From Macrostomum lignano (Eukaryota): DNA of 64,000 nt. Under the pieces are notes generated by a model, which saw only the letters and a program-made list of their open reading frames with translations, was not told the DNA's origin and did not search any database. The position numbers and the translations under genes were made by a program. Positions within the stretch are counted from its first letter, which is position 1; the number at the start of each line of letters is the position of its first letter. This document shows positions 14,203-63,930 of this stretch, one piece after another. The stretch lies in contig NIVC01003687.1 of NCBI GenBank assembly GCA_002269645.1, forward strand, positions 1 to 64,000, written 5' to 3'.

Positions 14203-17200
14203 CTATTCGTTATCGTCGCCGTCCATCAGCGCCGCCGAGAAGGCCGCAGCAGCCGCGGCCACCACCGCGGAATCGCGCGCCCCGCCGTCGCCAGCCGTTG
14301 AAATGGTGCGCCGCTTGTTCCGGTCGTGCTGCAGGCCGCGGCGACGAGCTGCGCCACCGCTGCCACCGCCGCCGCCGCTGGTGCCGCCGCTGCTTGGCAC
14401 GTACATCGAGCGCGACATCAGCGAGGAGCCGGCAGCGGAGTCGCTGTCTTCCGCCCCGCTGCTGCCGCCGCCGCGGCCCTCGGGCCCGGAGAAGGCCGGC
14501 CCGCCGCCCAGGGTTGAAAAGCCTCGCGGAGAAGTCACCGACAAGCTTCTAAATTTGGAAACGGGTGGTAAAATTTTGGGGAATCCAATCAGCCAGCATC
14601 AGTTGAAGGAGGCAGTCAACTAGACCCAACTAACCAATTTCACAATGCATCAATGGTTAATAAGTGCTCACAAGTCCGCCATGCTCTGGGCCCGCTCGAT
14701 GGACTCAAGTTTGAACTTCAACTCGTCATAATTCATGCTGATCTTGCTTTTGGCCTTGTTCTCCTGGTCCAGCCGCTTCACCAGCTGCTGGTAGCGATCG
14801 TGCAGGCTCCTGCGAGCGGCAGAGTCGGGTTGCTCAACTGCTGGCAGACCTGATGGCCTCTTCCGCCATGCACTAAGCCTACCCAGGCTCCTCTCATCTG
14901 ATTCCAGACCCTCGCAGACCTCCCCCACCCTCTCCCAGGTCTTCCCCACCCTCTAACAGAACTCCCCCACCCTCTCCCACGCCTTCCCTACCATCGCCCA
15001 GAACTCCCCCACCCTCTCCCAGACCTTCACCACCCTCTCCCAGACCTTCCCCACCCTCTCCCAGGTCTTCCCCACCCTCTAACAGAACTCCCCCACCCTC
15101 TCACACGCCTTCCCTACCATCGCCCAGAACTCCCCCACCCTCTCCCAGACCTTCACCACCCTCTCCCAGACCTTCCCCACCCTCTCCCAGGTCTTCCCCA
15201 CCCTCTAACAGAACTCCCCCACCCTCTCCCAGACCTTCACCACCCTCTCCCAGGTCTTCCCCACCCTCTAACAGAACTCCACCACCCTCTCACACGCCTT
15301 CCCTACCATCGCCCAGAACTCCCCCACCCTCTCCCAGACCTTCCCCACCCTCTCCCAGACTTTCACCACCCTCTCCCAGACCTTCCCCACCCTCTTCCAG
15401 ACCTTCCCCACTATCTGCATCTTCACCACCCTCGAGAGACTTCCCATCCTACCCTCCCTTCCCCATCCTACCCTCCCTTCCCCATCCTACCCTCCCTTCC
15501 CCATCCTACCCTCCCTTCCCCATCCTACCCTCCCTTCCCCATCCTACCCTCCCTTCCCCATCCTACCCTCCCTTCCCCATCCTACCCTCCCTTCCCCATC
15601 CTACCCTCCCTTCCCCATCCTACCCTCCCTTCCCCATCCTACCACCCCATTCCCCATCCTCACTTCTCATTCTCGGTCTTCTGCGCGACGACGGCCTCCA
15701 GGTTCTCCAGCCGGCGCTGCAGCAGGGCGTTCCGCTCCCGCGTGTCCCGCAGTGCCTGCAGTTTCTCGTCCGATTCGGCGAGGCGGCGCCTCAAATCCGC
15801 CAGCTCGGCGTTGCGGAGCTCCAGCATCGAGCTCAGCGAGCTGATCTCGTCTGGCAGGTGGCGGCGACTCGACTGGGAGGGATGAGAGTGGGGATAATTA
15901 TGGATTTGGTCAGGCTGGGAATCAGTTTGGTCAGGTTGGGGATCAGTTTGGTCAGGTTGGGAATCAGTTTGGTCAGGCTGGGGATCAGTTTGGTCAGGTT
16001 GAGGATCAGTTTGGTCAGGTTGGGAATCAGTTTGGTCAGGTTGGGAATCAGTTTGGTCAGGTTGGGGATAAGTTTGGTCAGGCTGGGAATCAGTTTGGTC
16101 AGGTTGAGGATCAGTTTGGTCAGGCTGGGAATCAGTTTGGTCAGGCTGGGGATAAGTTTGGTCAGGCTGGGAATCAGTTTGGTCAGGCTGGGAATCAGTT
16201 TGGTCAGGCTGGGAATCAGTTTGGTCAGGCTGGGAATCAGTTTGGTCAGGCTGGGAATCAGTTTGGTCAGGCTGGGAATCAGTTTGGTCAGGCTGGGAAT
16301 CAGTTTGGTCAGGCTGGGAATCAGTTTGGTCAGGCTGGGAATCAGTTTGGTCAGGCTGGGGATAAGTTTGGGGATCAGTTTGGTCAGGTTGGGGGATCAG
16401 TTTGGTCAGGTTGGGAATCAGTTTGGTCAGGTTGGTGATAAGTTTGGGGATCAGTTTGGTCAGGTTGGGGATCAGTTTGGTCAGGCTGGGGATAAGTTTG
16501 GGGATCAGTTTGGTCAGGTTGGGGATCAGTTTGGTCAGGCTGGGGATAAGTTTGGGGATCAGTTTGGTCAGGTTGGGAATCAGTTTGGTCAGGTTGGGAA
16601 TCAGTTTGGTCAGGCTGGGAATCAGTTTGGTCAGGTTGGGGATCAGTTTGGTCAGGTTGAGGATCAGTTTGGTCAGGTTGGGAATCAGTTTGGTCAGGCT
16701 GGGAATCAGTTTGGTCAGGTTGGGAATCAGTTTGGTCAGGTTGGGAATCAGTTTGGTCAGGTTGGGAATTAGTTTGGTCAGGTTGGGGGATCAGTTTGGT
16801 CAGGTTGGGAATCAGTTTGGTCAGGTTGGGAATCAGTTTGGTCAGGTTGGGAATCAGTTTGGTCAGGTTGGGGGATCAGTTTGGTCAGGTTGGGAATCAG
16901 TTTGGTCAGGTTGGGGATCAGTTTGGTCAGGCTGGGAATCAGTTTGCAGGTTGGGAATCAGTTTGGTCAGGTTGGGGATCAGTTTGGTCAGGCTGGGAAT
17001 CAGTTTGGTCAGGCTGGGAATCAGTTTGGTCAGGCTGGGGATCAGTTTGGTCAGGCTGGGGATAAGTTTGGGGATCAGTTTGGTCAGGTTGAGGATCAGT
17101 TTGGTCAGGCTGGGGATAAGTTTGGGGATCAGTTTGGTCAGGTTGGGAATCAGTTTGGTCAGGCTGCGAATCAGTTTGGTCAGGTTGGGGATCAGTTTGG

Positions 17201-20200
17201 TCAGGTTGGGGGATCAGTTTGGTCAGGTTGGGAATCAGTTTGGTCAGGTTGGGGATCAGTTTGGTCAGGCTGGGAATCAGTTTGCAGGTTGGGAATCAGT
17301 TTGGTCAGGTTGGGGATCAGTTTGGTCAGGCTGGGGATCAGTTTGGTCAGGCTGGGAATCAGTTTGGTCAGGCTGGGGATCAGTTTGGTCAGGCTGGGGA
17401 TAAGTTTGGGGATCAGTTTGGTCAGGTTGGGGATCAGTTTGGTCAGGCTGGGGATAAGTTTGGGGATCAGTTTGGTCAGGTTGGGAATCAGTTTGGTCAG
17501 GTTGGGAATCAGTTTGGTCAGGCTGGGAATCAGTTTGGTCAGGTTGGGGATCAGTTTGGTCAGGTTGGGGATCAGTTTGGTCAGGTTGGGAATCAGTTTG
17601 GTCAGGCTGGGAATCAGTTTGCAGGTTGGGAATCAGTTTGGTCAGGTTGGGAATCAGTTTGGTCAGGTTGGGAATCAGTTTGGTCAGGTTGGGGGATCAG
17701 TTTGGTCAGGTTGGGAATCAGTTTGGTCAGGTTGGGGGATCAGTTTGGTCAGGTTGGGAATCAGTTTGGTCAGGTTGGGAATCAGTTTGGTCAGGTTGGG
17801 AATCAGTTTGCAGGTTGGGGATCAGTTAGTCAGGCTGGGGATCAGTTTGGTCAGGTTGGGAATCAGTTTGGTCAGGTTGGGGGATCAGTTTGGTCAGGTT
17901 GGGAATCAGTTTGGTCAGGTTGGGGGATCAGTTTGGTCAGGTTGGGAATCAGTTTGGTCAGGTTGGGGGATCAGTTTGGTCAGGCTGGGGATCAGTTTGG
18001 TCAGGCATGAAAATTCTGCTTAATTCTGCTTAAAAATCTGCTTTTTATATTACTGTAAGTAAAAATGATGGAACATTTTTGTTTCAGAAGAATGAAAATA
18101 TTCAGACCTGCCCTGTGCTGTCCTCAGGCAGCGAGGCGAACTGCGCATGCAGCAGCTGCAGGTTGCCCGGCGACACGACTCGATCGTCGTGCGACACGGT
18201 GGAGGACGGACTGGCGCACGCCTCGCCTGAGCTCGTTGAATTTGGCCGGAACGGCGACTCCCCGTCTGGCGACTGGGAAATGGGATTGCGGATTGGGATT
18301 TGAGGGAAGGGGCGAAATGGGTAACGGTATTTATTCTTGGTGGCGGCGTTGGAGACCTAAGGAAGGGAAATTGAGGATGGGGAAGTGGGGATGGGGAAGT
18401 GGGGATGGGGAAGTGGGGATGGGGAAGTGGGGATGGGAAAGTGGGGGTTGGGGAAGTAGGGATGGGGAAGTGGGGATTGGGGAAGTGGGGATGGGAAAGT
18501 GGGGATGGGAAAGTGGGGATGGAAAATGTGGCGATGGGGAAGTGGGGATGGAAAAGTGGGGATGGGAAAGTGGGGATTGGGGAAGTAGGGATGGGGAAGT
18601 GGAGATGGGGAAGCGGGGATGGGGAAGTGGGGATGAGGAAGTGGGGATGGAAAATGTGGCGATGGGGAAGTGGGGATGGGGAAGTGGGGATGGGGAAGTG
18701 GGGATGGGGAAGTGAGGATGGGAAGTGGGGATGGGAAGTGGGGATATGGGAATGGCAAACAGACCTTGGCATCTGAGCTGTCGCTGAAGCCACTCCTTAT
18801 CTTGAGCTCAGCGTAGGCGGCCTGCAAATCCTGCAGCTTTTTCTGAAAGAAGCAGATTAGTGACAGATTAGTGACAGATTAGTGACAGATTAGTGACAGA
18901 TTAGTGACAGATTAGTGACAGATTAGTGACAGATTAGTGACAGATTAGTGACATATTCAGATTAGTGACATATTCAGATTAGTGACAGATTCAGATTAGT
19001 GACAGATTCAGATTAGTGACAGATTCAGATTAGTGACAGATTAGTGACAGATTAGTGACCGATTAGTTACAGCTGAGTCCACAACTCGATTATGCGGCAG
19101 GAAAATCGATCAGCAGCTTACGGTGAGGTGCGACTTCATGGCGTCAAATCGAACGCCGAGCTCGCGGACTTTGGCCTCGTGTTGGCGCTGCAGATCTGCG
19201 GGCGAGAGGCGAGAGGGAGGGGTAGATAGAGAGGGAGATTTGGACTGAGAGGATCAGGGAGACAGAGAGGAAGATGAGAAACAGAGAAGGCAGAGAGGGA
19301 GAGAAAAAGGGAGACAGAGAAGTAGGCAGAGAGGGAGACACAGAGGTTGAAAGAGGGAGAGAGGGAGACAGAGAGACAGAGAGGGAGACAGAGGGAGACA
19401 GAGAGGGAGACAGAGGGAGAGAGGGAGACAGAGAGACAGAGAGGGAGACAGAGGGAGAGAGGGAGACAAAGGGAGAGAGGGAGACAGAGGGAGAGAGGGA
19501 GAAAGGGAGACAGAGGGAGAGAGGGAGACAGAGAGGGAGACAGAGAGGGAGACAGAGAGAGGCAGAGAGGGAGACAGAGGGAGGCAGAGAGGGAGACAGA
19601 GGGAGGCAGAGAGGGAGACAGAGGGAGAGAGGGAGACAGAGGGAGAGAGGGAGAAAGGGAGACAGAGGGAGAGAGGGAGACAGAGGGAGAGAGGGAGACA
19701 GAGGGAGAGAGGGAAAAAGGGAGACAGAGGGAGAGAGGGAGACAGAGGGAGAGAGGGAGACAGAGGGAGAGAGGGAGAAAGGGAGACAGAGGGAGAGAGG
19801 GAGACAGAGAGGGAGACAGAGAGGGAGACAGAGGGAGAGAGGGAGACAGAGGGAGGCAGAGAGGGAGACAGAGGGAGGCAGAGAGGGAGACAGAGGGAGA
19901 CAGAAGGAGACAGAGAGGGAGACAGAGGGAGAGAGGGAGACAGAGGGAGGCAGAGAGGGAGAGAGAGGGAGACAGAGGGAGACAGAGAGGGAGACAGAGG
20001 GAGACAGAGAGGAGAGGGAGACAGAGGGAGGCAGAGAGGGAGAGAGAGGGAGACAGAGAGGGAGAGAGAGGGAGACAGAGGGAGACAGAGAGGAGAGGGA
20101 GACAGAGGGAGGCAGAGAGGGAGAGAGAGGGAGACAGAGGGAGACAGAGAGGGAGACAGAGGGAGACAGAGAGGAGAGGGAGACAGAGGGAGACAGAGAG

Positions 20201-23200
20201 GGAGACAGAGGGAGACAGAGAGGAGAGGGAGACAGAGGGAGGCAGAGAGGGAGAGAGAGGGAGACAGAGGGAGACAGAGAGGGAGACAGAGGGAGACAGA
20301 GAGGAGAGGGAGACAGAGGGAGACAGAGAGGGAGACAGAGGGAGACAGAGAGGAGAGGGAGACAGAGGGAGGCAGAGAGGGAGAGAGAGGGAGACAGAGA
20401 GGGAGACAGAGAGGGAGACAGAGAGGGAGACAGAGAGGGAGATAGAGAGGGAGACAGAGAGGGAGACAGAGAGGGAGACAGAGAGGGAGACAGAGAGGGA
20501 GACAGAAAGGGAGATAGAGAGGGAGACAGAGAGGGAGAGAGAGGGAGACAGAGGGAGACAGAGAGGAGAGGGAGACAGAGGGAGACAGAGAGGGAGACAG
20601 AGAGGGAGACAGAAAGGGAGATAGAGAGGGAGACAGAGAGGAGAGGGAGACAGAGGGAGGCAGAGAGGGAGAGAGAGGGAGACAGAGGGAGACAGAGAGG
20701 GAGACAGAGGGAGACAGAGAGGAGAGGGAGACAGAGGGAGGCAGAGAGGGAGAGAGAGGGAGACAGAGAGGGAGACAGAGAGGGAGACAGAGAGGGAGAC
20801 AGAGAGGGAGATAGAGAGGGAGACAGAGAGGGAGACAGAGAGGGAGACAGAGAGGGAGACAGAAAGGGAGATAGAGAGGGAGACAGAGAGGGAGACAGAG
20901 AGGGAGATAGAGAGGGAGACAGAGGGAGACAGAGAGGGAGACAGAGGGAGACAGAGAGGGAGACAGAGAGGGAGACAGAGAGGGAGACAGAGAGGGAGAT
21001 AGAGAGGGAGACAGAGAGGGAGACAGAGAGGGAGACAGAGAGGGAGACAGAAAGGGAGATAGAGAGGGAGACAGAGAGGGAGACAGAGAGGGAGATAGAG
21101 AGGGAGACAGAGGGAGACAGAGAGGGAGACAGAGGGAGACAGAGAGGGAGACAGAGGGAGGCAGAGAGGGAGATAGAGGGAGACAGAGAGGGAGACAGAG
21201 AGGGAGACAGAGAGGGAGATAGAGAGGGAGATAGAGAGGGAGACAGAGGGAGACAGAGAGGGAGACAGAGGGAGACAGAGAGGGAGACAGAGAGGGAGAC
21301 AGAGAGGGAGATAGAGAGGGAGACAAAGGGAGACAGAGAGGGAGACAGAGAGGGAGACAGAGAGGGAGATAGAGAGGGAGACAGAGGGAGACAGAGAGGG
21401 AGACAGAGGGAGACAGAGAGGGAGACAGAGGGAGGCAGAGAGGGAGATAGAGGGAGACAGAGAGGGAGACAGAGGGAGACAGAGAGGGAGACAGAGGGAG
21501 ACAGAGAGGGAGACAGAGAGGGAGACAGAGAGGGAGACAGAGAGGGAGATAGAGAGGGAGACAGAGAGGGAGACAGAGAGGGAGATAGAGAGGGAGACAG
21601 AGGGAGACAGAGAGGGAGACAGAGGGAGACAGAGAGGGAGACAGAGGGAGACAGAGAGGGAGACAGAGGGAGGCAGAGAGGGAGATAGAGGGAGACAGAG
21701 AGGGAGACAGAGGGAGACAGAGAGGGAGACAGAGGGAGACAGAGAGGGAGACAGAGAGGGAGACAGAGAGGGAGATAGAGAGGGAGACAGAGAGGGAGAC
21801 AGAGAGGGAGACAGAAAGGGAGATAGAGAGGGAGACAGAGAGGGAGACAGAGAGGGAGATAGAGAGGGAGACAGAGGGAGACAGAGAGGGAGACAGAGGG
21901 AGACAGAGAGGGAGACAGAGGGAGACAGAGAGGGAGACAGGTGTGAGTGAGAAGTCCAGTTAGCCACAGCAAGCCAGATTTTGGATTCAATGTGCGCAAG
22001 CTAGGGGGGGGGGTGGCAAAGTAGTATCCCAGAGGCAGATGTCAGTCAGTGCGGACACCTTGCTCCAGCTCTGCCAGCTGCCGCTGCGCAGCCGCCAGTT
22101 CTTCATCGTGCCGTTGTCGCTCCTCGTCGAGCTCGTCCTGCCGGGACTCCGCAACCGCCGACAGCTGCAAGCGGGGCGGCAGTGGGGGGTCAGGCCGGGG
22201 GTCAGTCATTAAGCGCAGTGCCGGAGGGGGGCTACCAGCAGGTGATGGCTAATGAGTTTAATCTCACACTGTCAAACAGTTAGCGGCAAACGGTTCGGTT
22301 AGAAAACTGGCTCATTAATTATGATAATTAGTTAACCTTCCATGGCCAGGCGGTGCTGCAGTTTGCACTGTTCAAGCCGCTTGTCCGTGACTTTCTCCGA
22401 GGCCGTCTGGTGCGCGTCGTCCACGCTGGACCGGTGCCTCAGCTGGCGGCGGGTGGCGGCCAGTGCGATGGGGCCTCTGAGCCGCTGTCTGTTCCCCATC
22501 TGCCCTTCGCTTGCCTTCCTGACCGATTCTGACTTTCTTGTCTCCCGCTCTCCCTCCCTCTCTGTCTCCCTCCCCATCTCCCCCTCTTTCCCCTCTGTCT
22601 CCCTCTCTGTCTCCCTCTGTGTCTCCCTCCCGATCTCCCCCTCTGTCCCCTCTGTCTCCCTCTCTGTCTCCCTCTCTGTTTCCCTCACTGTCTCCCTTTC
22701 TGTCTACCTCTCTGTCTCCCTCTCTGTCTCCCTCTCTATCTCCCTCTCTGTCTCCCTCTCTGTCTCCCTCTCTATCTCCCTTTCTGTCTCCCTCTCTGTC
22801 TCCCTCTCTGTCTCCCTCTCTGTCTCCCTCTCTATCTCCCTCTCTGTCTCCCTCTCTGTCTCCCTCTCTGTCTCCCTCTCTGTCTCCCTCTCTATCTCCC
22901 TCTCTGTCTCCCTCTCTATCTCCCTCTCTGTCTCCCTCTCTATCTCCCTCTCTGTCTCCCTCTCTGTCTCCCTCTCTGTCTCCCTCTCTGTCTCCCTCTC
23001 TGTCTCCCTCTCTGTCTCCCTCTCTGTCTCCCTCTCTGTCTCCCTCTCTGTCTCCCTCTCTGTCTCCCTCTCTGTCTCCCTCTCTGTCTCCCTCTCTGTC
23101 TCCCTCTCTGTCTACCTGTCTCCCTCTACTCAGCGCTGACAGCCCCAGCTCACCTGGGCCTGGTGCGTGCTCTCCACAGCCTCCATCTGTTTGCGGTGCT

Positions 23201-26200
23201 GCTCCGCCAGCCGACTCAGCGCCTCGTCCCTCTCCTTCTCGATCATCAGGCGAGTGTTGCGGACCTCCCGGATCTGCGCCTCCCTGGCAGCGGCCAGCTC
23301 AGCCCGCTGGCAGCGGTCCCGCTCCGCCAGGTGTTCGGCGAAGCGACTCCGCGCCTCCGCCTCGCTTGCCTCGGCCGCCTCGGCCCGCCGCCGCTGCCGC
23401 TCCGCCTCCCGGCGCAGCCGAGGAGCCGAAAAGCCGTCCAGCTCGGCCGCCCGGCCGCACACCACCGCCAGGGCGTCGAAGGCCAGAAGGAGACGGCGCT
23501 GCTCTGCCATGGCGGCGTCCAGACTGACCTCCTTGTCCGCCAGCAGCACCTGCGGCGGAGTCCAGGGGATACAGCGTTTGAATTGCAGCCTTTTATGTAG
23601 AGCCTTGCCCATCTTCATCGGAATCCCCAGGTTCCACATCAGAATTGTCAGGTTCCACATTGGAATCCTCAGGTTCCCCATCAGAATCCTCAGGTTCCAC
23701 ATCGGAATCCTCAGGTTCCACATCGGAATCCTCAGGTTCCACATCGGAATCCTCAGGTTCCACATCGGAATCCTCAGGTTCCACATCGGAATCCTCAGGT
23801 TCCACATCGGAATCCTCAGGTTCCACATCGGAATCCTCAGGTTCCACATCGGAATCCTCAGGTTCCACATCGGAATCCTCAGGTTCCACATCGGAATCCT
23901 CAGGTTCCACATCGGAATCCTCAGGTTCCACATCGGAATCCTCAGGTTCCACATCGGAATCCTCAGGTTCCACATCGGAATCCTCAGGTTCCTCATCGGA
24001 ATCCTTAAGTTCCCCATTGGAATCTTCAGGCCCCCATCGTAACTCCAGCCCCACCCCATCCCCAGTCCCACCGCGCCACCGTCACCTGCAGGTCGCAGGC
24101 GGTCTGCTGCACGGAGTCCAGCTGAGCCCTGGCCGATGCGAGCTCCACGATGGTGGGCCGCCGGTGCTGCAGGACGCCTCCGTGATGCTGCTGAGTCAGG
24201 TGATGCTGGGAGCCGCCGGCCGGGGAGCTGCAGCCAGACGAGGCCTTCGAACTGTTGGCGATCGAGCCGCGGCGTCCGGCACTGACGGCCGAAGGAGGCG
24301 GCCGCGCCCGACCAGGGGCTGACGGTGCGGCCTGAGAGGGGTTGGCGGGGCTCTGTGAGGATGCCAGGTGGGATTTGAGTGTCTGCAAGGTAGGTGTGCA
24401 GAGGTGTGCAGAGGTGTGCAGAGTTGTGCAGAGTTGTGCAGAGGTGTGCAGAGGTGTGCAGAGGTGTGCAGAGGTGTGCAGAGGTGTGCAGAGGTGTGCA
24501 GAGTTGTGCAGAGGTGTGCAGAGGTGTGCAGAGGTGTGCAGAAGCGTGCAGAGGTGTGCAGAGGTGTGCAGAGGTGTGCAGAGGTGTGCAGTAGAGGTGT
24601 GCAGAGGTGTGCAGCAGAGGTGTGCAGAGGTGTGCAGAGGTGTGCAGAGTTGTGCAGCAGAGGTGTGCGGAGGTGTGCAGAGGTGTGCAGAGTTGTGCAG
24701 AGGTGTGCAGCAGAGGTGTGCAGAGGTGTGCAGAGTTGTACAGCAGAGGTGTGCGGAGGTGTGCAGAGGTGTGCAGAGGTGTGCAGAGGTGTGCAGCAGA
24801 GGTGTGCAGAGGTGTGCAGAGTTGTACAGCAGAGGTGTGCAGAGTTGTGCAGCAGAGGTGTGCAGAGGTGTGCAGAGGTGTGCAGAGGTGTGCAGAGGTG
24901 TGCAGCAGAGGTGTGCAGAGGTGTACAGGGGAGATTTTAAAAGGTTTGTATAAAATATTTTGACAGAATCAGTTGAAATTACCAATAGGATTTGATGATT
25001 AGCAAATAAGAAAATGTCGCCGAATCTATAAAAACATTTTTACGTTCACGAAATCACGGAACTAGCTACTGATAGCCACTACCACTAGTAGTATGCAGCG
25101 TGCTTGAATATTAATAAAAAAAAATATTTGAGCAAACAGTGAGGACAATGGGAACATAGAAGCTCTCTACCTGGATCGAAGGATAGGTCCCGTTAGTCTA
25201 AAACAGCACCGCCAGAGCTCATAATAAGGTAAGGCAAAAGTTTCACACTGAAAAAATATTCACGCAGAATTTAACAACTCTGACAAACCTTCGACAACTT
25301 TTTAGCGACCCCGGCGGCGCCGCTGCGGCTCGAGGAAGCCACTGACGAAGTTGAGGAGACCGCCGTGACGGGGGAGCCGGTTGCCTTGGCAACCAGACGC
25401 GACTGCTGCGGAACCCCTGACGGCCGAACTGCAGCGGGCATGGGGAATTTTTTGGAGTTTAACAACGGTCTTCAAATAGATTTTTTCGAATTTTCAATTG
25501 GGAAAAAAAGTGGACCTAGCGGGGCTCGAACCCGCGACCTTTGGATTTTAAATCCAACTTTCTAACCAACTGAGACTACAGGCCCGCTGACAAATCGAAA
25601 CTTTTTGTTGCATTTAATTTGACCACTTCATCATAAACTTTTTACTTGGGAATTCCAATCACCAATATAGCTTCAATACGCCAAACTCCTACTGACAGTA
25701 GGAAATGCGCACATTTGCTGTATTACGCCCTGCCAGTTAGATCTATTTTTAGACTGACAGGCTCCGCCTATGCACCGGCTTGCTTTTACGCCGATAAAGT
25801 TTCGCAGAGTGCAATGAACAACCATAGCCAGCTAACTTAAAAAAGTTCATTCTTCTAAAAAATACTCTTGAAATGCTCAGTAAGAAACAAGCGCGATTTC
25901 ATGGATACACTGGGTTGTTTATCCCACTCTTTTTAATCCCCATTTTCCTTGTTATCCAGTCGAAAGTCGCTCACCGCCAGGTCTGGCCAGCGATGACGAG
26001 GCACAGGCAGCTGCCGTCGGGACCGCCCGCTTGACTGCCTGGCTGCCGACCGCCTGAGGCAGCGACTTCAGCTTTGTCGGCGCTGTTGCAGTTGACGGAG
26101 TCGGCAGGGCCGACTGTCGCCTTGACGACGCGGTCGTTGAACTCTTAGTCGCAGCGGCAGACGCGGCGGTGCTGGCGGCGCTGGCAGCTTCGGAGGCCGG

Positions 26201-30379: not shown

Positions 30380-33300
30380 CTAGCTGGAGTCCGACTGGGC
30401 CACGCCGACCGCCCGACAAAAGCCGGGCAGGTCGCGCGCCTCAACCAGCGCTTTCAGGGCCGTCACGCGGTCGCCAGTTGACGAAGTGGACGATGGTTCG
30501 AAGGCCATCCGAGCCACGGTCTGTCTGGCGAGGTTCCACACCGAGCTGTCGGACTGACGGCCAGGCTGCAGCAGCCGCAGGGCAGAAGCGTAGTTGCTGA
30601 GGGCCTGCGCGAGTTATGAAGGAAAATACGCTGTTTGTTTCGTAGAAATGTTAAAAAATAGCTCAGACTGTAGCCTTATTATTAGCTCAGACTGTAGCCT
30701 AGTTATTAGCTCAGACTGTAGCCCAATTATTAGCTCAGACTGTAGCCTAACTATTAGCTCAGACTGTAGCCTAACTATTAGCTCAGACCGTAGCCTAACT
30801 ATTAGCTCAGACTGTAGCCTAACTATTAGCTCAGACCGTAGCCTAACCATTAGCTCAGACTGTAGCCTAGTTATTACTGGTAGCTCAGACTGCAACCTAA
30901 TTATTAGCCCAGACTGTACCCTAGTTATTAGCTCAGACTGTAGCCTAGTTATTAGCTCAGACTGTAGCCTAACTATTAGCTCAGACTGTAGCCTAACTAT
31001 TAGCTCAGACCGTAGCCTAACTATTAGCTCAGACTGTAGCCTAACTATTAGCTCAGACCGTAGCCTAACCATTAGCTCAGACTGTAGCCTAACTATTAGC
31101 TCAGACTGTAGCCTAATTATTAGCTCAGACTGTAGCCTAATTATTAGCTCAGACTGTAGCCTTATTATTAGCTCAGACTGTAGCCTTAATATTAGCTCAG
31201 ACTGCAGCCTAATTATTAGCCCAGACTGCAGCCTAATTATTAGCTCAGACTGTAGCCTAATTATTAGCCCAGACTGCAGCCTAATTATTAGCTCAGACTG
31301 TAGCCCAATTATTAGCTCAGACTGTAGCCCAATTATTAGCTCAGACTGTAGCCCAATTATTAGCTCAGACTGCAGCCTAATTATTAGCTCAGACTGCAGC
31401 CCAATTATTAGCTCAGACTGCAGCCTAGTTATTAGCCCGGACCGTAGCCTAATTATTAGCCCAGACTGTAGCCTAATTATTAGCTCAGACTGCAGCCTAG
31501 TTATTAGCCCGGACTGTAGCCTAATTATTAGCCCAGACTGTAGCCTAATTATTAGCTCAGACTGCAGCCTAGTTATTAGCCCGGACTGTAGCCTAATTAT
31601 TAGCCCAGACTGTAGCCTAATTATTAGCTCAGACTGCAGCCTAATTATTAGCCAAGTCAATTATCTCAAACCTGGTCGTAGGCGCGCAGACTGTGGCAGG
31701 CGATGCCCAGATTGGCGCGGGCGCGCACAAAGCCGGGCGCCAGGCTGAGGGCGCGCCTGTAGGCCTGCACAGCCTCCTCGTGACGGCCACTGTTAGCCAG
31801 AGTGGCGCCCAGCTTATTCCAGCTTAGATAGTCATCTGGCTGCACCTGTGAGAGTGGTGAAATATCAGATTCCTATATTAACTACTACCTAACCGGCTGG
31901 GCTAGCCTATTGACTAAAAGTTAAGCTGACTGGCTGCGGTTAGTACGCGAGAGTGCATTTGCCTGACAATTAGAAAGTCAAGTGCCGCTGTAAACCCTGT
32001 GTGAGCGCGTGTATAAGTGCAGTATTGGCGCTACCAAACTACCAATTTGCTATGCCATTTGGCACGCCTCTAAGCCTCACCCAGTGCCAGTGCAAATCAT
32101 TCTCACCTGCAGCGCAGCCTTGAAGGAGTCCACAGCCCGCTGGAAGTCGCCGTGCAGGTTGTACAGCACACCCAACGCCAGCTGCAGCTCCGGGTCAGGC
32201 GAGCCGGCCGTCTGCCTCGCCGCCGCGGCCAGCAGCAGCCGCTCGCAGCGGGAGAACTCCGCGTAGGTGGCGAACCCGCCAACGGTTGGCGCGGCGGCTT
32301 CGGCGGAGTCGGCGGAGGCACCGGCCAGCAGGTCGGAGTAGGCAGGATTGGCGGCCAGCCAGGACAGCAGGGCGTGGACGGCCTCGGAGTTGCGCAGCTC
32401 GTTGGTGAAGCTGCGCGCCAACGACAGCAGGGCCGGGCGGTCCTGCGGCGACAGAGACAGGCAGCGCTGGCAGGCGGTGATGGCGTCCGGCTCGCGCTCC
32501 GCCTCGGCCAGGCTGATGCCCAGGTGGCGCCACGCCTCCGCGCTGTCCGGGGCGCGGGCGGCTGCCGCCTCAAACAGCAGGACGGCTTCGGGCACGCGGC
32601 CTTGGCGCATCGCGGCCAGCCCTGCGCCCAGCGGGTCCGCCTCCTCCGCGTGTGGGTTGTCTGCCTGGGGGGGGGGGAGGGGAGGATCTGTGAGAGTGGC
32701 TGAGGGTCTGTGAGGGTGGCTGAGGATCTGTGAGAGTGGCTGAGGATCTGTGAGGGTGGCTGAGGATCTGTGAGAGTGGCTGAGGATCTGTGAGGGTGGC
32801 TGAGGATCTGTGAGAGTGGCTGAGGATCTGTGAGGGTGGCTGAGGATCTGTGAGAGTGGCTGAGGATCTGTGAGGGTGGCTGAGGATCTGTGAGAGTGGC
32901 TGAGGATCTGTGAGGGTGGCTGAGGATCTGTGAGAGTGGCTGAGGATCTTTGAGGGTGGCTGAGAATCTGTGAGAGTGGCTGAGGATCTGTGAGAGTGGC
33001 TGAGGATCTGTGAGGGTGGCTGAGGATCTGTGAGAGTGGCTGAGGATCTGTGAGGGTGGCTGAGGATCTGTGAGAGTGGCTGAGGATCTGTGAGGGTGGC
33101 TGAGGATCTGTGAGAGTGGCTGAGGATCTGTGAGGGTGGCTGAGGATCTGAGAAGACAGTAGCCCAGCCTGAGGATCTGTGGGTGTCCTTGAGGAGCTGA
33201 GAAGACAGTAGCCCAGCCTGAGGATCTGTGGGTGTCCCTGAGGAGCTGAGAAGACAGTAGCCCAGCCTGAGGATCTGTGGGTGTCCCTGAGGAGCTGAGA

Positions 33301-36291
33301 AGATAGTAGCCCAGCCTGAGGATCTGTGGGTGTCCCTGAGGAGCTGAGAAGACAGTAGCCCAGCCTGAGGATCTGTGGGTGTCCCTGAGGAGCTGAGAAG
33401 ATAGTAGCCCAGCCTGAGGATCTGAAAAGGTGACAGTGGCCAGAGCATCTGGACAGGCTCACCTGAAAGACGTATTCACGTTTCGTCTCGCTGGCGGACG
33501 CAGTGGCAGAGGCGGCGCCGGCCGCTCCCAGGGTGTCGTCGTCCAGGTACTGGGACCAGGTGCGGGACAGGTCCTCCCAGAAGCGGTCCTTCTCGGCGTC
33601 AGTCTCCGTGTAGGTGCCGGACCGCAGCTGCTCCAGAGCGCTGGCCAGCCGCTCCTCGGGCTGGTGGTCCATGTCAGTGTCCATGTCGTCGGTCAGTTGG
33701 GCGGAGTCGGCCGGCAGCAGCAGGTGGTCCCGCTCGGCCAGAAAGTTGGCGCCCCAGCTCGGCTGTTGCACGGAGGCGGCGGCCGGCGGCGCGGCCGGCA
33801 GCAGCATCGGGGCGGAGGGCCCGCGCAGCATCATCAGGGGGAGGCCCAGCGACTGCGGCGCGGCCGCAGCTGAGGATTGGCCAGACATTCTGTTGACTTG
33901 CCAGCTTGATATTCCCTATCGCAATCTAATCTCACCCTTATCGATCTAATCTCACCCTTCCCAATCTAATCTCACCCTTCTCAATCTAATCTCACCCTTC
34001 TCAATCTAATCTCACCCTTCTCGGTCTAATCTCACCCTTCTCGGTCTAATCTCACCCTTCTCGGTCTAATCTCACCCTTCTCAATCTAATCTCACCCTTC
34101 TCGGTCTAATCTCACCCCTTCCTTAATCCAATCTCAACCCGCATTTTTAATAATATTATTAAAGGAATAATAGACCATCTATTATCTAATCTAACCATCT
34201 CGGGCAATCATATTTCATCATTCTAGCTGTCTCATATCACACCATTATTCCAACCTTATCTCAGCCTTTCTGATAATCTCACCACACCATCCCAGCCAAG
34301 CCTCACCGGTGGCCGCTGACGGCAGAGAAGGTGTGGACGCGGACACGTGAAACGCAGAGGCGGCGGAGGCAGCCGAGGATGTCGCTGCTGCTGCGGCGGC
34401 TGCCGGCACAGACGAGGCGGCAGAGAAGGCGAGCGCTTCAGCCAGCAGAGCCTGCATGTTGAACGTCTGCGGGGCCGCAGTCGCCGCCGTAGCACCCTGG
34501 TGAGGGGGGGGTTTTGAGCTTGGTGAGCTGCATGTTGCACCCAAATCCTCCGCCCTAATCCTCGGCCCTTCAATCCTCGAACCCCCAATTCTCGGCCCTC
34601 AACCCTCAGCCCCTCAACCCTCCCCCCTCTCAATCCTCAGCCCGTCAACCCTCCCCCTCCCCAATCCTCCACCCTCCCAATCCTCCACCCTCCCCAATCC
34701 TCCCCTCCCCAATCCTCCACCCTCCCCAATCCTCCCCCTCCCCAATCCTCCCCCTCCCCAATCCTCCACCCTCCCCAATCCTCCAACCTCCCCAATCCTC
34801 CACCCTCCCCAATCCTCCACCCTCCCCAATCCTCCACCCTCCCCAATCCTCCAACCTCCCCAATCCTCCACCCTTCCCAATCCTCCACCCTCCCCAATCC
34901 TCCAACCTCCCCAATCCTCCAACCTCCCCAATCCTCCACCCTCCCCAATCCTCCAACCTCCCCAATCCTCCACCCTCCCCAATCCTCCAACCTCCCCAAT
35001 CCTCCAACCTCCCCAATCCTCCACCCTCCCCAATCCTCCAACCTCCCCAATCCTCCAACCTCCCCAATCCTCCACCCTCCCCAATCCTCCAACCTCCCCA
35101 ATCCTCCACCCTCCCCAATCCTCCAACCTCCCCAATCCTCCAACCTCCCCAATCCTCCACCCTCCCCAATCCTCCAACCTCCCCAATCCTCCACCCTCCC
35201 CAATCCTCCAACCTCCCCAATCCTCCACCTCCCCAATCCTCCACCCTCCCCAATCCTCCACCCTCCCCAATCCTCCACCCTCCCCAATCCTCCACCCTCC
35301 CCAATCCTCCACCCTCCCCAATCCTCCACCCTCCCCAATCCTCCCCCCTCCCCAATCCTCCACCCTCCCCAATCCTCCACCCTCCCCAATCCTCCACCCT
35401 CCCAATCCTCCACCCTCCCCAATCCTCCACCCTCCCCAATCCTCCCCCTCCCCAATCCTCCCCCTCCCCAATCCTCCACCCTCCCCAATCCTCCAACCTC
35501 CCCAATCCTCCACCCTCCCCAATCCTCCACCCTCCCCAATCCTCCACCCTCCCCAATCCTCCAACCTCCCCAATCCTCCACCCTTCCCAATCCTCCACCC
35601 TCCCCAATCCTCCAACCTCCCCAATCCTCCAACCTCCCCAATCCTCCACCCTCCCCAATCCTCCAACCTCCCCAATCCTCCACCCTCCCCAATCCTCCAA
35701 CCTCCCCAATCCTCCAACCTCCCCAATCCTCCACCCTCCCCAATCCTCCAACCTCCCCAATCCTCCAACCTCCCCAATCCTCCACCCTCCCCAATCCTCC
35801 AACCTCCCCAATCCTCCACCCTCCCCAATCCTCCAACCTCCCCAATCCTCCAACCTCCCCAATCCTCCACCCTCCCCAATCCTCCAACCTCCCCAATCCT
35901 CCACCCTCCCCAATCCTCCAACCTCCCCAATCCTCTAACCTCCCCAATCCTCCACCCTCCCCAATCCTCCACCCTCCCCAATCCTCCACCCTCCCCAATC
36001 CTCCACCCTCCCCAATCCTCCACCCTCCCCAATCCTCCACCCTCCCCAATCCTCCCCCTCCCCAATCCTCCACCCTCCCCAATCCTCCACCCTCCCCAAT
36101 CCTCCCCCTCCCCAATCCTCCACCCTCCCCAATCCTCCGCGAACCTGCAGCTGCTGCGCCCGCACGGCCTGCTGGCCGACCTCCTGCCTGTGCGTCTGGT
36201 CGCCACGGGTCACGTGCTGGCTGAGGCTGACCAGTGCGTTCTGGCCGGAGCAGCCGGGCTCGGCCAGCCGACGGGCCAGGGACTCGGCCAT
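30380..36291 (-). CDS. PEX5: Peroxisomal targeting signal 1 receptor PEX5, 6 exons, about 566 aa
   Basis: Exons 36291-36145, 34496-34307, 33869-33463, 32664-32107, 31845-31672, 30604-30380. N-terminal [12 protein letters not shown] carries the conserved ubiquitinated Cys; [12 protein letters not shown]; WGANF (WxxxF); FWEDL; TPRs ([48 protein letters not shown]); C-terminal ARDL. Confidence 0.96.
30660..31655. repeat. 24-bp minisatellite in PEX5 intron 5
   Basis: Unit ATTATTAGCTCAGACTGTAGCCTA, about 41 copies. Confidence 0.95.
32690..33425. repeat. 20-bp array followed by a related 49-bp array in PEX5 intron 3
   Basis: GAGGATCTGTGAGAGTGGCT, then GAGGATCTGTGGGTGTCCCTGAGGAGCTGAGAAGACAGTAGCCCAGCCT. 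Confidence 0.93.
33920..34135. repeat. 20-bp array in PEX5 intron 2
   Basis: Unit TCTAATCTCACCCTTCTCAA. Confidence 0.88.
34560..36138. repeat. 17-bp C-rich (sense G-rich) array in PEX5 intron 1
   Basis: Unit CCCCAATCCTCCACCCT, about 90 copies. Confidence 0.95.
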
Positions 36292-36789: not shown

Positions 36790-37000
36790 ACAGCCAGTCC
36801 AAGAGCTTTCTAGAAGTCCCTGATTCAGCTTAACCAGTCCAAGAGCTATGTAGAAGTCCCTAATTTAGTCCAGCCAGTCCAAGAGCTATCTAGAAGTCCC
36901 TAATTCAGTCCAGCCAGTCCAAGAGCTATCTAGAAGTCCCTAATTCAGTCCAGCCAGTCCAAGAGCTATCTAGAAGTCCCTAATTCAGTCCAGCCAGTCC
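36790..37000 (-). repeat. 40-bp tandem repeat overlapping the WASHC1 stop codon
   Basis: Five units of sense GACTGGCTGGACTGAATTAGGGACTTCTAGATAGCTCTTG. Confidence 0.92.
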
Positions 37001-39654
37001 TGATCGTCGCCATCGCTGCCGTCACCGGCTGCCGTCTCAGCGGCCTCCTGAGCAATCATTGCGCTTACGGTGTCGAACATCGAGTTGCCCGTGCCGCCGC
37101 TGCCTCCGCCATTGCCGTTGCCACCACTGCCGCCGCCGCCGCCGCCGCCGCCCGCGATGCCCTGTCGCCGCTTACTCAGCCGCATCTTCAACTGCGCCAT
37201 CATGTCCATGCCGCCAGCCTCCGCTCCGCCACCGCCGCGCCCCCCACCATCGTCGGCGCCAGCGTCGGCGGTTTCCCGATCGTCGCGAATCCGACGTTTC
37301 CGTTCGAGTTTTCGCTCCTTCACGGACTTCAGCTTGGCTTTGCCGGCGCCGCCAGCCTGTCGAATGGCGTCCAACAGACTGGCGCGAGACGCGTCCGGCG
37401 CCGCCACGGCGCCAGGCAGATCGCCAGGCGGAGGTGGCGGAGGCGGCGGTGGCGGAGGAGGCGGAGGGGGAGGCGGAGGGGGCGGCGGAGGGGGAGGCGG
37501 CGGCACGCCAGCGGAAGGCGGAGGCGGAGGCGGTGGAGGGGGCGGAGGGGGCGGAGGGGGCGGAGGGGGCGGAGGAGGGGCCGGCTCAGAAGCCGCAGCG
37601 GAGGCAGGCGGAGGCGGCGGAGCGCTGGGTAGGTCGCCGAGGCTGCTGAGGATGTTGTCGGCAGCGGACGGGGCGATGCCGGGCCCGAGGTCGCCGAGGT
37701 ATTGGACATTCTCGGCCACCCCGGCCAGCTGGGGCAGGCGGGCCGGCAGGCTCTCCATGTCGGGCACGGCGCCCAGGGTGGGCACGTACAGCAGGGAATC
37801 GGCGCCGGGCGCCTCCAGGCGGTCGCCCAGCAGGATGCTGTCGGGCGCCTGGCCGGGCGTGGCGCCGCCGCCGCCGCTGGAGTCGTCGGATTGAACGGCT
37901 CGAACTCGGTGGACAACGCCGAGCGGATCCAGCAGGCTGTACTTCCGGTAGGGATTCTCGGCAGTGTTGAACAGCAGCAGGCCGCTGAGCGACCGCAGCC
38001 CTGGCGGCGGCCGGCCGAGGCCTTCGGCGGCTGCCGCGCGCTTGGCGCCGGGAGGGCGCAGCGGCAGCATCATGTAGTGCCGCTTTTCGGCCAGCAGCGC
38101 CTCCGTCAGCGCCTCGTGCTGGGCGGCCACACGACGGACCGCCGTCTGGACCTCCCCCACTGCAGCAGTCGCGGCAGCGCCCTCGCCTTCCGGCGCGAAG
38201 GGCGACAGAAAAGCTGGCGCCGAGTCGCCTCCGGCGGGAAATTTCGGGACCGCAAACACCTGCGGGATCATTTGGATGGCATTTTTATCCCAACAGCTCG
38301 CAAATAACCTGAGTCTCCTTATCACTTGACTCTCATTCCCATCATCTGACTCTCATTCCCATCACCTGACTCTCATTCCCAACACCTGACTCTCATTCCC
38401 AGCACCTGACTCTCATTCCCATCACCTGACTCTCATTCCCAACACCTGACTCTCATTCCCATCACCTGACTCTCCTTCCCATCACCTGACTCTCATTCCC
38501 AACACCTGAATCTCATTCCCATCACCTGACTCTCATTCCCAGCACCTGACTCCCATTCACAACACCTGACTCTCATTCCCAACACCTGACTCTCATTCCC
38601 AACACCTGACTCTCATTCCCAACACCTGACTCTCATTCCCAGCACCTGACTCTCATTCCCAGCACCTGACTTTCATTCCCAACACCTGACTCTCATTCCC
38701 AACACCTGACTCTCATTCCCATCACCTGACTCTCATTCCCAGCACCTGACTCCCATTCACAACACCTGACTCTCATTCCCAACACCTGACTCTCATTCCC
38801 AGCACCTGACTCTCATTCCCATCACCTGACTCTCATTCCCAACACCTGACTCTCATTCCCAGCACCTGACTCTCATTCCCATCACCTGACTCTCATTCCC
38901 AACACCTGACTCTCATTCCCATCACCTGACTCTCCTTCCCATCACCTGACTCTCATTCCCAACACCTGAATCTCATTCCCATCACCTGACTCTCATTCCC
39001 AGCACCTGACTCCCATTCACAACACCTGACTCTCATTCCCAACACCTGACTCTCATTCCCAACACCTGACTCTCATTCCCAACACCTGACTCTCATTCCC
39101 AGCACCTGACTCTCATTCCCATCACCTGACTCTCATTCCCAACACCTGACTCTCATTCCCAACACCTGACTCTCATTCCCATCACCTGACTCTCATTCCC
39201 AGCACCTGACTCCCATTCACAACACCTGACTCTCATTCCCAACACCTGACTCTCATTCCCAGCACCTGACTCTCATTCCCAGCACCTGACTCTCATTCCC
39301 AACACCTGACTCTCATTCCCAGCACCTGACTTTCATTCCCAGCACCTGACTTTCATTCCCAACACCTGACTCTCATTCCCAACACCTGACTCTCATTCCC
39401 AGCACCTGACTCCCCCGCACCTGCACAGCCCGAGTCGTCCCCTTCAAAAAGTCGATCTTGGCCTGGCAGTCGGCGGCTCTGCGCCGCAGGCGGTCGCACT
39501 CGGCCCGCTGCTCAGCCAGCCGGCTGCCCAGCCTGTCGAACACGGCCTCGGCCACCCCGGCCACCTCGGCCAGCGAGTCAGCAGACTGCACCAGCAGCTC
39601 TTCGTGGCGCAGATCGGCTGATGGCGGGCGCACCTGCAGCGGCTGAGCTGGCAT
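36985..39654 (-). CDS. WASHC1: WASH complex subunit 1 (Arp2/3 nucleation-promoting factor), 2 exons, 502 aa
   Basis: Exons 39654-39421 and 38259-36985. WAHD (DLRHEE...AKIDFLKG...VFAVPKFP; LLLFNTAENPYRKY..LDPL), long polyproline, WH2 (RASLLDAIRQAGGAGKAKLKSVKERK), central helix (MDMMAQLKMRLSKRRQGI) and acidic DDQDWLD end. Confidence 0.96.
38330..39412. repeat. 20-bp minisatellite filling the WASHC1 intron
   Basis: Unit TCTCATTCCCAACACCTGAC, about 54 copies. Confidence 0.96.
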
Positions 39655-43144: not shown

Positions 43145-46100
43145 CTAGGCTGGCGAAGACTCCTGCGCACCGCTGTTGCCGCCTTTAGCGCAGTGGTGGC
43201 GCCGCTCGCGCATGAAGACGCGGAAGCGGCCGGGGTCCGCCAGATCTGGCTGCACATGCAGCGTGTACTTTGACTCGCTCTCCATCTGTGCGACCATCTG
43301 GTGAGAGAGTGGAGAAATAAATATTATATGTTTAGACCCGATAAGCTCTTCTCGGTACTCGATAAATAGATTGGCAGTTGGATGAGTAGATTAGCAGTTG
43401 GATAAGTAGATTGGCAGTTGGATAAGTAGATTGGCAGTTGGATAAGTAGATTGGCAGTTGGATAAGTAGATTGGCAGTTGGATAAGTAGATTGGCAGTTG
43501 GATAAGTAGATTGGCAGTTGGATAAGTAGATTGGCAGTTGGATAAGTAGATTGGCAGTTGGATAAGTAGATTGGCAGTTGGATAAGTAGATTGGCAGTTG
43601 GATAAGTAGATTGGCAGTTGGGTGAGTAGATTTGCATTTATATAAGTAAATTAGCAGATAGATGAGCCTATTGGTAGATGGATGGGAAGATAAAGATTTC
43701 GTTTTATTTGTAAAATAAGTTGCAGCACCACCACTTTCGAGTCTGGCTCACCTCATCTGTAATGCACACGGCAATGCTGGTTGGGCCATAGACAAGCACC
43801 TGAGAGATCTTGTCGCCGTCAGCTTGAAACAGGCTGGTGATTCGGTTGAACAGTTCCTCGTAGGTGAGCTGGGACAGGTAGACTGGGTGGAACACTGCAG
43901 TGGGCGGGATTGAGAACAGTGGGTTGTAGGACAAATCTCAGGCAGTGTGTAACTAGAGTCTCAGGCAGTGTGTGACTGGAGTCTCAGGCAGTGTGTGACT
44001 GGAGTCTCAGGCAGTGTGTGACTGGAGTCTCAGGCAGTGTGTGACTGGAGTCTCAGGCAGTGTGTGACTGGAGTCTCAGGCAGTGTGACTGGAGTCTCAG
44101 GCAGTGTGACTGGAGTCTCAGGCAGTGTGTGACTGGAGTCTCAGGCAGTGTGACACAAAGTGTACTATTAGCACAAAACGTGGCACCACTTGCACCGATC
44201 CTGGCTAACCAGTGTACCAAAACTATTTAGCTATTCGGGCCGAAAAGCCCGACTGTGGCGCCACCCAATCCGTCACACCTGGCCGCACAGAAAAGGTCGC
44301 TAAACAGGCTTATCTCAGCTGAGAATTTGCACACGGATTGGCTGGCCTGGGCCCATATAGGACACTCGTGGCCGCACAAAGAAAGGCCAGCTTATCGGTC
44401 AAAGCCGGGGGCTGACGCAGACAAGAGAATAGAGAAATACTTGCAGACAAACTATACAAGTCCGGCTGTTCGAGTTTGAAAAACAACATAACTTTTTCAA
44501 GTACAGACATAAACTTTAAATACCAAAAAACAGTACAGTGAACTGAAGGTTGGTACATTTGTAAGAGTAAGGCGGTGAGGAGAGGAGTGGGAGTCGAGAG
44601 GGTTGGGGGCGAGTTAGGTAGAGGAACTCAGGCGGAGGGGAGTCAGGCGGAGGGGAGTCAGGCGGAGGGGAATCAGGCGGAGGGAAGTCAGGCGGAGGGG
44701 AATCAGGCGGAGGGGAGTCAGGCGGAGGGGAGTCAGGTAGAGGGGAGTCGGCGGGGAGGAGTCAGGAGGGGAGTCAGGCGGGGAGGAGTCAGAAGGGGAG
44801 TCAGGCGGGAAGCAGTCAGGAGGAGGGGAGTCAGGCGGGGAGGAGTCAGGACGGGAGTCAGGCTGTGGGGAGTCAGGCGGAGGGGAGTCAGGCGGCGGGG
44901 GGTCAGGCGCAGGGGAGTCAGGCGGAGGGGAGTCAGGTGGAGGGGAGTCAGGCGGAGGGGAGTCAGGCGGAGGGGAGTCAGGCGGAGGGGAGTCAGGCGG
45001 AGGATAGTCAGGCGGAGGGGAGTCAGGCGGAGGATAGTCAGGCGGAGGGGAGTCAGGCGGCGGGGTGTCAGGCATAGGGGAGTCAGGTGCAGGGGAGTCA
45101 GGCCATGAGCTCACCGCTGTCAGTCTCCTGGCTGACGAAGAAGACGAGCCGGGAGCGGCAGGGGCGCTGCAGGATGGCGTTGGCCAGGCGGATGCCCTCC
45201 CCCACGCCGCAGATTTCGGTCAAGTCATTGCGGGACAGCCGCAGCAGGTCGTAGCCGGAGAAGTTCTTGAAGACGCCAGTCAGCGTGTTGAACCGCTGGC
45301 GGCGCAGCCAGTCGGCCACCTGGCGGGGCGAGCAGTTCGCGGTCAGTTCCGTCACCGACGGCTCTGCTTGGCTCAGCGGCTGCGGCGGCGGCGGAGGCGG
45401 GAGCGGCGGCGGCGGCGGCGGCGGCGGCGTGGGCTCCAACTGAGGACTTCTCGGCGAGGCGGTCGAACCCGACAGCGGTGGGCTGGGCGCTGCGCCGTTG
45501 CTGACGATGACGCCGCGTGGACGGCCCGGCCCGCTGGGCGGGTGGCTGCCAGGGGCGAGTGTGGTCGAGCTGGCGAGCGAGGGATCGTTTGAAGATTGTT
45601 AGTTTGATGGGTAGATTGGTAGTTGGATGGGTAGATTGGTAGTTGGATGGGTAGATTGGTAGTTGGATGGGTAGATTGGTAGTTTGATGGGTAGATTGGT
45701 AGTTGGATGGGTAGATTGGTAGTTGGATGGGTAGATTGGTAGTTGGATGGGTAGATAGGTATTTTGATAAGTAGATTGGTAGTTTGATGGGTAGATTGGT
45801 AGTTGGATGGGTAGATTGGTAGTTTGATAAGTAGATTGGTAGTTTGATGGGTAGATTGGTAGTTTGATGAGAAGATTGGTGGTTTGATGAGTAGATTGGC
45901 AGTTGGATGGGCAGATTGGCAGTTGGGTTGGCAGATTGGCAGAAATAACCGTTGGCTCACATAGCGATGGGTCCCTGCTGTCTCAGCTGCTTTGTCGGAG
46001 GCGCCGCAGTCTGCTGCTCAAGGGAGTCGGCCGCGGCCACCGTCAGGAAAGGCGTGTAGGGCAGCGGAGTCTGGTACTTGCCGCCGTGGTCGCCGCGCCT

Positions 46101-63146: not shown

Positions 63147-63179
63147 CTGCGAGGGGTGCAAAAGTTGGGCAGCTCAGCT

Positions 63180-63930
63180 GGTTGCTCACTTCAGTGACAC
63201 ATCTGGTTGCTCACTTCAGTGACACATCTGGTTGCTCACTTCAGTGACACATCTGGTTGCTCACTTCAGTGACACATCTGGTTGCTCACTTCAGTGACAC
63301 ATCTGGTTGCTCACTTCAGTGACACATCTGGTTGCTCACTTCAGTGACACATCTGGTTGCTCACTTCAGTGACACATCTGGTTGTTCACTTCAGTGACAC
63401 ATCTGGTTGCTCACTTCAGTGACACATCTGGTTGCTCACTTCAGTGACACATCTGGTTGCTCACTTCAGTGACACATCTGGTTGCTCACTTCAGTGACAC
63501 ATCTGGTTGCTCACTTCAGTGACACATCTGGTTGCTCACTTCAGTGACACATCTGGTTGCTCACTTCAGCGACACATCTGGTTGCTCACTTCAGTGACAC
63601 ATCTGGTTGCTCACTTCAGTGACACATCTGGTTGTTCACTTCAGCGACACATCTGGTTGCTCACTTCAGTGACACATCTGGTTGCTCACTTCAGCGACAC
63701 ATCTGGTTGCTCACTTCAGTGACACATCTGGTTGCTCACTTCAGTGACACATCTGGTTGTTCACTTCAGCGACACATCTGGTTGTTTACTTCAGTGACAC
63801 ATCTGGTTGTTCACTTCAGTGACACATCTGGTTGCTCACTACAGTGACACATCTGGTTGCTCACTACAGTGACACATCTGGTTGCTCACTACAGTGACAC
63901 ATCTGGTTGCTCACTACAGTGACACATCTG
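63180..63930. repeat. 25-bp array in a VPS52 intron
   Basis: Unit TCAGTGACACATCTGGTTGCTCACT, about 30 copies. Confidence 0.96.

Follow-up and report, generated by a model that had tools for sequence, protein, structure and literature searches.

A candidate tandem pair of mutually exclusive 106-nt exons in an MTUS-like gene of Macrostomum lignano

We analysed a stretch of 64,000 nucleotides (nt) of Macrostomum lignano DNA (contig NIVC01003687.1 of assembly GCA_002269645.1, positions 1 to 64,000; hereafter the window) and found that an MTUS-like gene on its minus strand contains, in the interval between two constitutive exons, two putative internal exons, A and B, of the same length and the same reading phase. 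We put the probability at roughly 50% that these two are a tandemly duplicated exon pair used in a mutually exclusive manner, a reading in which the splicing of A, the exclusivity and a functional difference between the two exons are inferred from the genomic sequence. The elements concerned are as follows, in transcript order and with splice junctions marked by a slash.

23154 to 23549, minus strand: upstream constitutive exon, 396 nt, phase 0 at its end (...STHQAQ), donor cag/gtgagc, covered by the family alignment
22560 to 23131, minus strand: intronic minisatellite upstream of exon A, reading (GAGAGGGAGACA)n on the transcript strand and forming an inverted pair with the array downstream of B
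22337 to 22442, minus strand: exon A, candidate alternative exon of 106 nt, phase 0 to phase 1, acceptor gccgccag/CTG, weak donor GAAG/gttaac
22165 to 22336, minus strand: A-B intron, 172 nt, AT-rich right after A, with ATTAAA at 22262-22257
22059 to 22164, minus strand: exon B, 106 nt, phase 0 to phase 1, acceptor cgcttgcag/CTG, weak donor CAAG/gtgtcc
19250 to 21960, minus strand: intronic minisatellite downstream of exon B, reading (TGTCTCCCTCTC)n on the transcript strand and reverse-complementary to the array before A
19122 to 19195, minus strand: downstream constitutive exon, 74 nt, phase 1 to phase 0, encoding (G) + 25 residues
19195-19122, 18842-18765, 18272-18108, 15872-15664, 14809-14672 and 14548-14203 (stop), minus strand: exons of the downstream gene model

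Both A and B are preceded by a pyrimidine-rich tract and CAG, both start with CTG, and each encodes 35 codons plus one G. An earlier sequence-only reading of this DNA had described them as two 106-nt exons running from phase 0 to phase 1 and starting at CAG/CTG, and we read the same directly on the minus strand. To the upstream exon we joined a downstream gene model assembled from splice consensus and reading frame, and the four possible combinations of A and B were spliced onto this model in silico. With A alone or with B alone the frame stays open to the stop codon at 14203, while inclusion of both exons places a stop 21 codons into B, and omission of both places one within the 74-nt exon. 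The earlier statement that either exon joins its neighbours in frame, and that both or neither break the frame, was thus matched by the in silico products, and the GGT TAA that it had noted on read-through of the A donor is also present, the TAA lying at 22334-22332. Since the length of 106 nt is not a multiple of three, just those messenger RNAs (mRNAs) that carry a single copy encode the conserved C-terminal domain of the protein.

Such a pair is not readily obtained by chance in this window. The flanking exons are separated by 3958 nt, most of which is minisatellite, and in the non-repeat part of this interval there are two open-frame islands that end at an in-phase GT, namely those of A and B. 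When both strands of the 64-kilobase window were scanned for segments of the form AG-[106 nt, open]-GT, 136 were found, of which three lie in the flanking-exon interval on the strand of the gene, these being A, B and a third that extends into the minisatellite. Because A and B are the sole in-phase open islands, and because so few of the 136 segments fall in the interval, the pair exceeds what is expected by chance.

The gene was assigned to its family by an exhaustive phmmer search against 1.8 billion representative proteins, which returned 56 matches. Named proteins among them are MTUS2 of Taenia solium, MTUS1 of Biomphalaria, MTUS2 of Patella and Lingula, and an MTUS1-like protein of Lytechinus, with mollusc and arthropod fusion proteins named CAP-Gly or 'restin' among the matches as well. 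The E-values to proteins annotated as MTUS1 or MTUS2 range from 1e-9 to 1e-21 over the C-terminal domain; the Taenia protein P0029 and the Biomphalaria protein P0019 match the window exons d4+d5 with E = 1e-9 and 2e-11, respectively, and both carry the precomputed Pfam assignment PF27558 (MTUS1_CCDC69_CC2). Our own Pfam scan, made with a model set that lacks PF27558, found no family above threshold, and known carriers of PF27558 were also unmatched in it. A conserved tail of 13 residues in the window gene is common to the cestode proteins, and M. lignano has two more such proteins, P0003 and P0005, which are paralogous to it at 36-41% identity. On this sequence evidence the locus is an M. lignano member, or paralogue, of the MTUS1 (ATIP)/MTUS2 (TIP150) family of helical, microtubule-associated proteins, one of at least three in this species, and the label 'MTUS-like' given earlier agrees with the annotation of its relatives as MTUS1 or MTUS2 in Taenia, Biomphalaria, Patella, Lingula and Lytechinus. 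The succession of a 106-nt and a 74-nt exon is shared with the family, occurring at the equivalent place in Taenia and Biomphalaria, and the gene differs from the other members examined in that a duplicated copy of the 106-nt exon appears to be present.

Reading of the genomic loci showed that the orthologous exon of Taenia solium has 35 codons plus a G (106 nt), runs from phase 0 to phase 1 and is followed by a 74-nt exon, and that the orthologous exon of Biomphalaria glabrata has the same length, the same phases and the same 74-nt successor. An iterated search over the retrieved homologues gave a gap-free alignment of the 35-residue segment across 38 proteins, whose sources range from flatworms to amphioxus, and a position-specific profile was constructed from these 38 homologues with no window-derived sequence. 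Against this profile B scores 21.0 bits, which ranks it first of the 48,062 stop-free 35-mers in the window, and it is also the best of the 136 AG-106-GT segments. In BLASTP comparison with the paralogue P0003, the B isoform aligns ungapped through B with 11 of 35 identities, whereas the A isoform needs two gaps and has a lower score. By these alignments B is the conserved ancestral exon, and the 106-nt exon is, as judged from the loci compared, an ancient unit of fixed size across flatworms and molluscs. The stretch just upstream (window 23252-23148) scores 20.9 bits against the exon profile, the helical region being internally repetitive, and the unit is matched twice in some homologues (Helobdella P0030 and Lingula P0008); the 35-residue unit may have descended from an older internal repeat.

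The same profile was applied to A, which scores +5.1 bits (shuffle p = 0.02), lies in the top 0.33% of all 35-mers, and ranks second among the 136 AG-106-GT segments, after B, the third scoring -0.4. As two of the 135 non-B candidates are located inside the right interval, the chance of the best one being among those is about 0.015. The scores of the two exons are distributed differently along their length, A having -6.4 bits in residues 1-22 and +11.5 bits in residues 23-35, and B having +19.7 bits and +1.2 bits in the same parts. A keeps the family residues H30, M34 and E35, that is, the C-terminal H..ME signature, which B has lost, and B keeps the family residues L1, S2, H19, E21 and E22. 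Moreover, the end of A, ATG GAA G/gt, is identical to the end of the Biomphalaria exon. The guanine-plus-cytosine (GC) content of A at codon positions 1/2/3 is 0.69/0.37/0.86, which resembles that of the other exons of the gene and is in the top 3.6% of non-repeat open windows, and the GC content of the 80 nt after A is 35%. Because several independent signals of moderate strength point the same way (the profile rank, the H..ME signature, the exon-like codon GC and the exact ancestral length), A most probably arose by an old tandem duplication and has been preserved intact. The 'old exon duplication' of the earlier note is supported in so far as A is second to B in its fit to the family profile; a similarity between A and B themselves is undetectable directly.

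Several observations weigh against a duplicated and mutually exclusive pair. At the protein level A and B share 4 of 35 residues (BLOSUM shuffle p = 0.46), and at the nucleotide level they are 29% identical, which is below the codon-shuffle mean. This lack of similarity has to be set against the fast evolution of the exon, since true orthologue pairs are equally dissimilar by the same shuffle test (p = 0.31 for B and the Taenia exon; p = 0.27 for P0003 and the Taenia exon). The profile score of A is modest, and its first 22 residues are unlike the family. Its donor gttaac, with T at +3 and A at +5, is the poorest in the gene. When the loci of Taenia solium and Biomphalaria glabrata were scanned with the profile, no second copy of the exon was found, and the annotated isoforms of Patella, Ruditapes, Lytechinus, Centruroides and Lingula show no equal-length swap at this exon, differing instead at their N-termini and in small cassettes elsewhere. 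Because the exon is single in Taenia and Biomphalaria and no swap is annotated in these five animals, the putative duplication is, by this comparison, specific to the Macrostomum lineage or to this paralogue. Conservation of both exons in related species, which had been proposed as a check, was found for B in Taenia and Biomphalaria, and A is absent from both loci.

Public protein entries do not add weight to A either. Stretch after stretch, the UniRef entries that carry the name Macrostomum lignano agree exactly with the window, which establishes the species, but they hop between frames and translate intronic minisatellite; from these features they are ab initio models of the window locus on an error-prone assembly and not transcript evidence. 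Several of the intron minisatellites are open in all three frames, so such public models translate them, as in the EDSDVEPE repeats of P0001. P0001 is the sole public model that includes A, and being a frame-hopping ab initio model that translates intronic minisatellite, it was ruled out as evidence of expression. Word-index protein searches returned only the frame-shifted UniRef models of the locus, and as they also missed known matches, the absence of transcript-derived proteins from their results is uninformative.

Some of these observations would also fit with B being constitutive and A being a decaying or regulatory relic, either an unspliced pseudo-exon or a 'poison' exon that would be included together with B and lower expression via nonsense-mediated decay. 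A+B inclusion does give a premature stop 21 codons into B, the A donor is the weakest in the gene, the first 22 residues of A score negatively against the family profile, and A was not seen in the other species examined. However, in a relic diverged to saturation the open frame, the exact length of 106 nt or a splice site would be expected to be gone, and A has kept all of them, together with coding-type GC periodicity and the most conserved C-terminal residues of the family. Furthermore, a poison exon needs no full-length openness in the upstream frame. We therefore consider this alternative unlikely, though by no means far-fetched.

Another alternative is that A serves as a last exon, in which the donor is ignored, translation ends at GGT TAA and the transcript is cleaved after ATTAAA, giving a truncated protein without the C-terminal MTUS domain. 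The TAA directly after A, stops in all three frames within 25 nt, the sharp fall of GC to 35%, the position of ATTAAA 75 nt downstream of A and the weak donor of A all speak for it. On the other hand, a last exon gives no reason for the ancestral length of 106 nt together with a GT in the exact phase, and an ATTAAA is not unexpected by chance in an AT-rich stretch of 170 nt, so that this alternative appears improbable. That A is a chance open intronic frame unrelated to B, with coincidental length, phase and splice dinucleotides, would agree with the lack of A-B similarity in protein and DNA, with the extension of its open frame upstream into the minisatellite and the several other AG sites before its donor, and with the frequent openness of GC-rich sequence, but is very improbable given that A is the best of 135 non-B candidates against an independent family profile and lies in the right interval (~0.015), that its length equals an exon size fixed across phyla, that its codon-position GC is exon-like (top 3.6%), and that true orthologues such as B and the Taenia exon are equally dissimilar.

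Under the preferred reading, that of a tandem duplicate pair used mutually exclusively, the internal 106-nt exon would have been duplicated in tandem in this MTUS gene, after which the downstream copy, B, would have kept the ancestral N-terminal two-thirds, and the upstream copy, A, would have diverged there and kept the ancestral C-terminal third. If A is saturated relative to B and yet has the exact length, an open frame, splice dinucleotides and coding composition, selection on the frame of A would be the simplest account of this; such selection would in turn imply that A is translated. Inclusion of one and only one copy would be enforced by the reading frame, with the products of double inclusion and double skipping removed via nonsense-mediated decay, the expected fate of mRNAs with early stops. 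The weak donors of A and B, both of which lack the G at +5 that is present in 6 of the 7 constitutive donors of the MTUS-like gene, are compatible with competing, regulated sites. Steric exclusion is unlikely across an intron of the length (172 nt) that separates A from B.

Tandem pairs of mutually exclusive exons enforced by frame and nonsense-mediated decay are a textbook class, of which exons IIIb and IIIc of vertebrate FGFR2 are an example. The A/B pair resembles this class in that the two exons are adjacent, lie in one interval and have equal length and phase, in that the length is not divisible by three, with inclusion of both or of neither leading to a premature stop, and in that one copy is near the ancestral sequence and the other diverged. 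It differs from the class in three respects: classic pairs usually keep a mutual similarity, which is undetectable for A and B; the usage proposed here is deduced from genomic sequence; and the 172-nt intron here speaks against steric exclusion. Our literature search on mutually exclusive exons in MTUS1 or in M. lignano found nothing relevant.

If the two exons were exchanged as proposed, the swap would replace a strongly acidic 35-residue stretch (net charge -7 for B) by a near-neutral one containing three histidines (net +1 for A) at constant length. The sequence-only reading was right about the acidity of B, and its description of A as basic-leaning was an overstatement, A being near neutral. 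AlphaFold single-sequence models predict both isoforms as one continuous helix over residues 2-126, with a predicted local distance difference test (pLDDT) value of 92.5 in the case of A and 94.4 in that of B. Heptad analysis of the segment gives no more than a weak, uninformative signal, whether for A, for B or for the family consensus, so the term 'coiled coil' used earlier was generous. On these models, the A/B swap would change the surface charge of a helical rod without changing its length, in line with the earlier proposal.

Two arrays of a single 12-nt unit, GAGAGGGAGACA in one and its reverse complement in the other, enclose the A/B pair in inverted orientation; the gap to A is about 118 nt on the upstream side, and that to B is about 99 nt on the downstream side. 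Outside these arrays the 12-mer is absent from the window, and within them it is present 122 times in one orientation and 30 times in the opposite one. The arms are about 480 nt long and about 80% complementary in many registers, and in the predicted fold of 21650-23135 (-922 kcal/mol) the arrays pair with each other and A and B are looped out. Intronic inverted repeats of such geometry favour exon skipping and back-splicing. As in exons that are looped out or circularized between Alu-type copies, long complementary arrays lie close to the exons in both flanking introns; the differences are that the arms here are 12-nt minisatellite arrays rather than transposon copies, and that the looping is a prediction from sequence. 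One could imagine that the paired arrays act as a length-polymorphic RNA switch, looping out about 600 nt and setting the balance among A, B, double skipping (followed by decay) and a small circular RNA, so that variation in array length between gene copies or individuals would tune the MTUS isoforms; we regard this as a speculative and distinctly unlikely extension of the model.

The same gene is rich in other tandem repeats, nearly every intron of it being filled by a different minisatellite, with units of about 21, 11, 14 and 21 nt and others.

23620-24030, 18860-19090, 18370-18740, 15900-17900 and 14900-15650: other intron minisatellites of the MTUS-like gene

The M. lignano genome has been described as containing 15% simple and tandem repeats and having a mean intron size of about 1.1-1.4 kilobases (PMC5730564), and the repeat load and intron sizes of the window agree with this description. 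The M. lignano model P0004 differs from window 15872-15664 in one residue (ESDEKLQ versus ESDEELQ), which suggests a second near-identical genomic copy or an allele, as may be expected because the DV1 genome is partly duplicated. Elsewhere on the minus strand of the window we noted four further genes or exons. A gene with TPR repeats, one exon of which matches TPR_1 with E = 4e-11, is located at about 30400-33900, just upstream of the MTUS-like gene, and presumably resembles PEX5, the peroxisomal receptor; in the public model P0002 the 3' end of this TPR gene is fused to the MTUS-like gene. A large exon at 36988-38352 encodes a WASH-complex WAHD domain (E = 8e-29) and a weak WH2 motif, an exon at about 45100-45600 encodes a SAM domain (SAM_3, E = 1e-15) followed by a proline-rich PPDS repeat, and a VPS52 homologue lies at about 59300-63200, with one exon matching Pfam Vps52_CC at E = 1e-51.

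Taken alone, the exon pair would be an ordinary type of gene feature, and its bracketing by inverted minisatellites is less ordinary. If transcripts confirm the proposed usage, A and B would represent a lineage-specific mutually exclusive pair in the MTUS family, none being annotated in the five other animals, and would illustrate how two copies can diverge in a complementary way in a helical segment that evolves rapidly at a fixed length. Having both versions, the acidic and the neutral, in a single animal amenable to transgenesis would then provide a handle on the role of this normally acidic 35-residue stretch.

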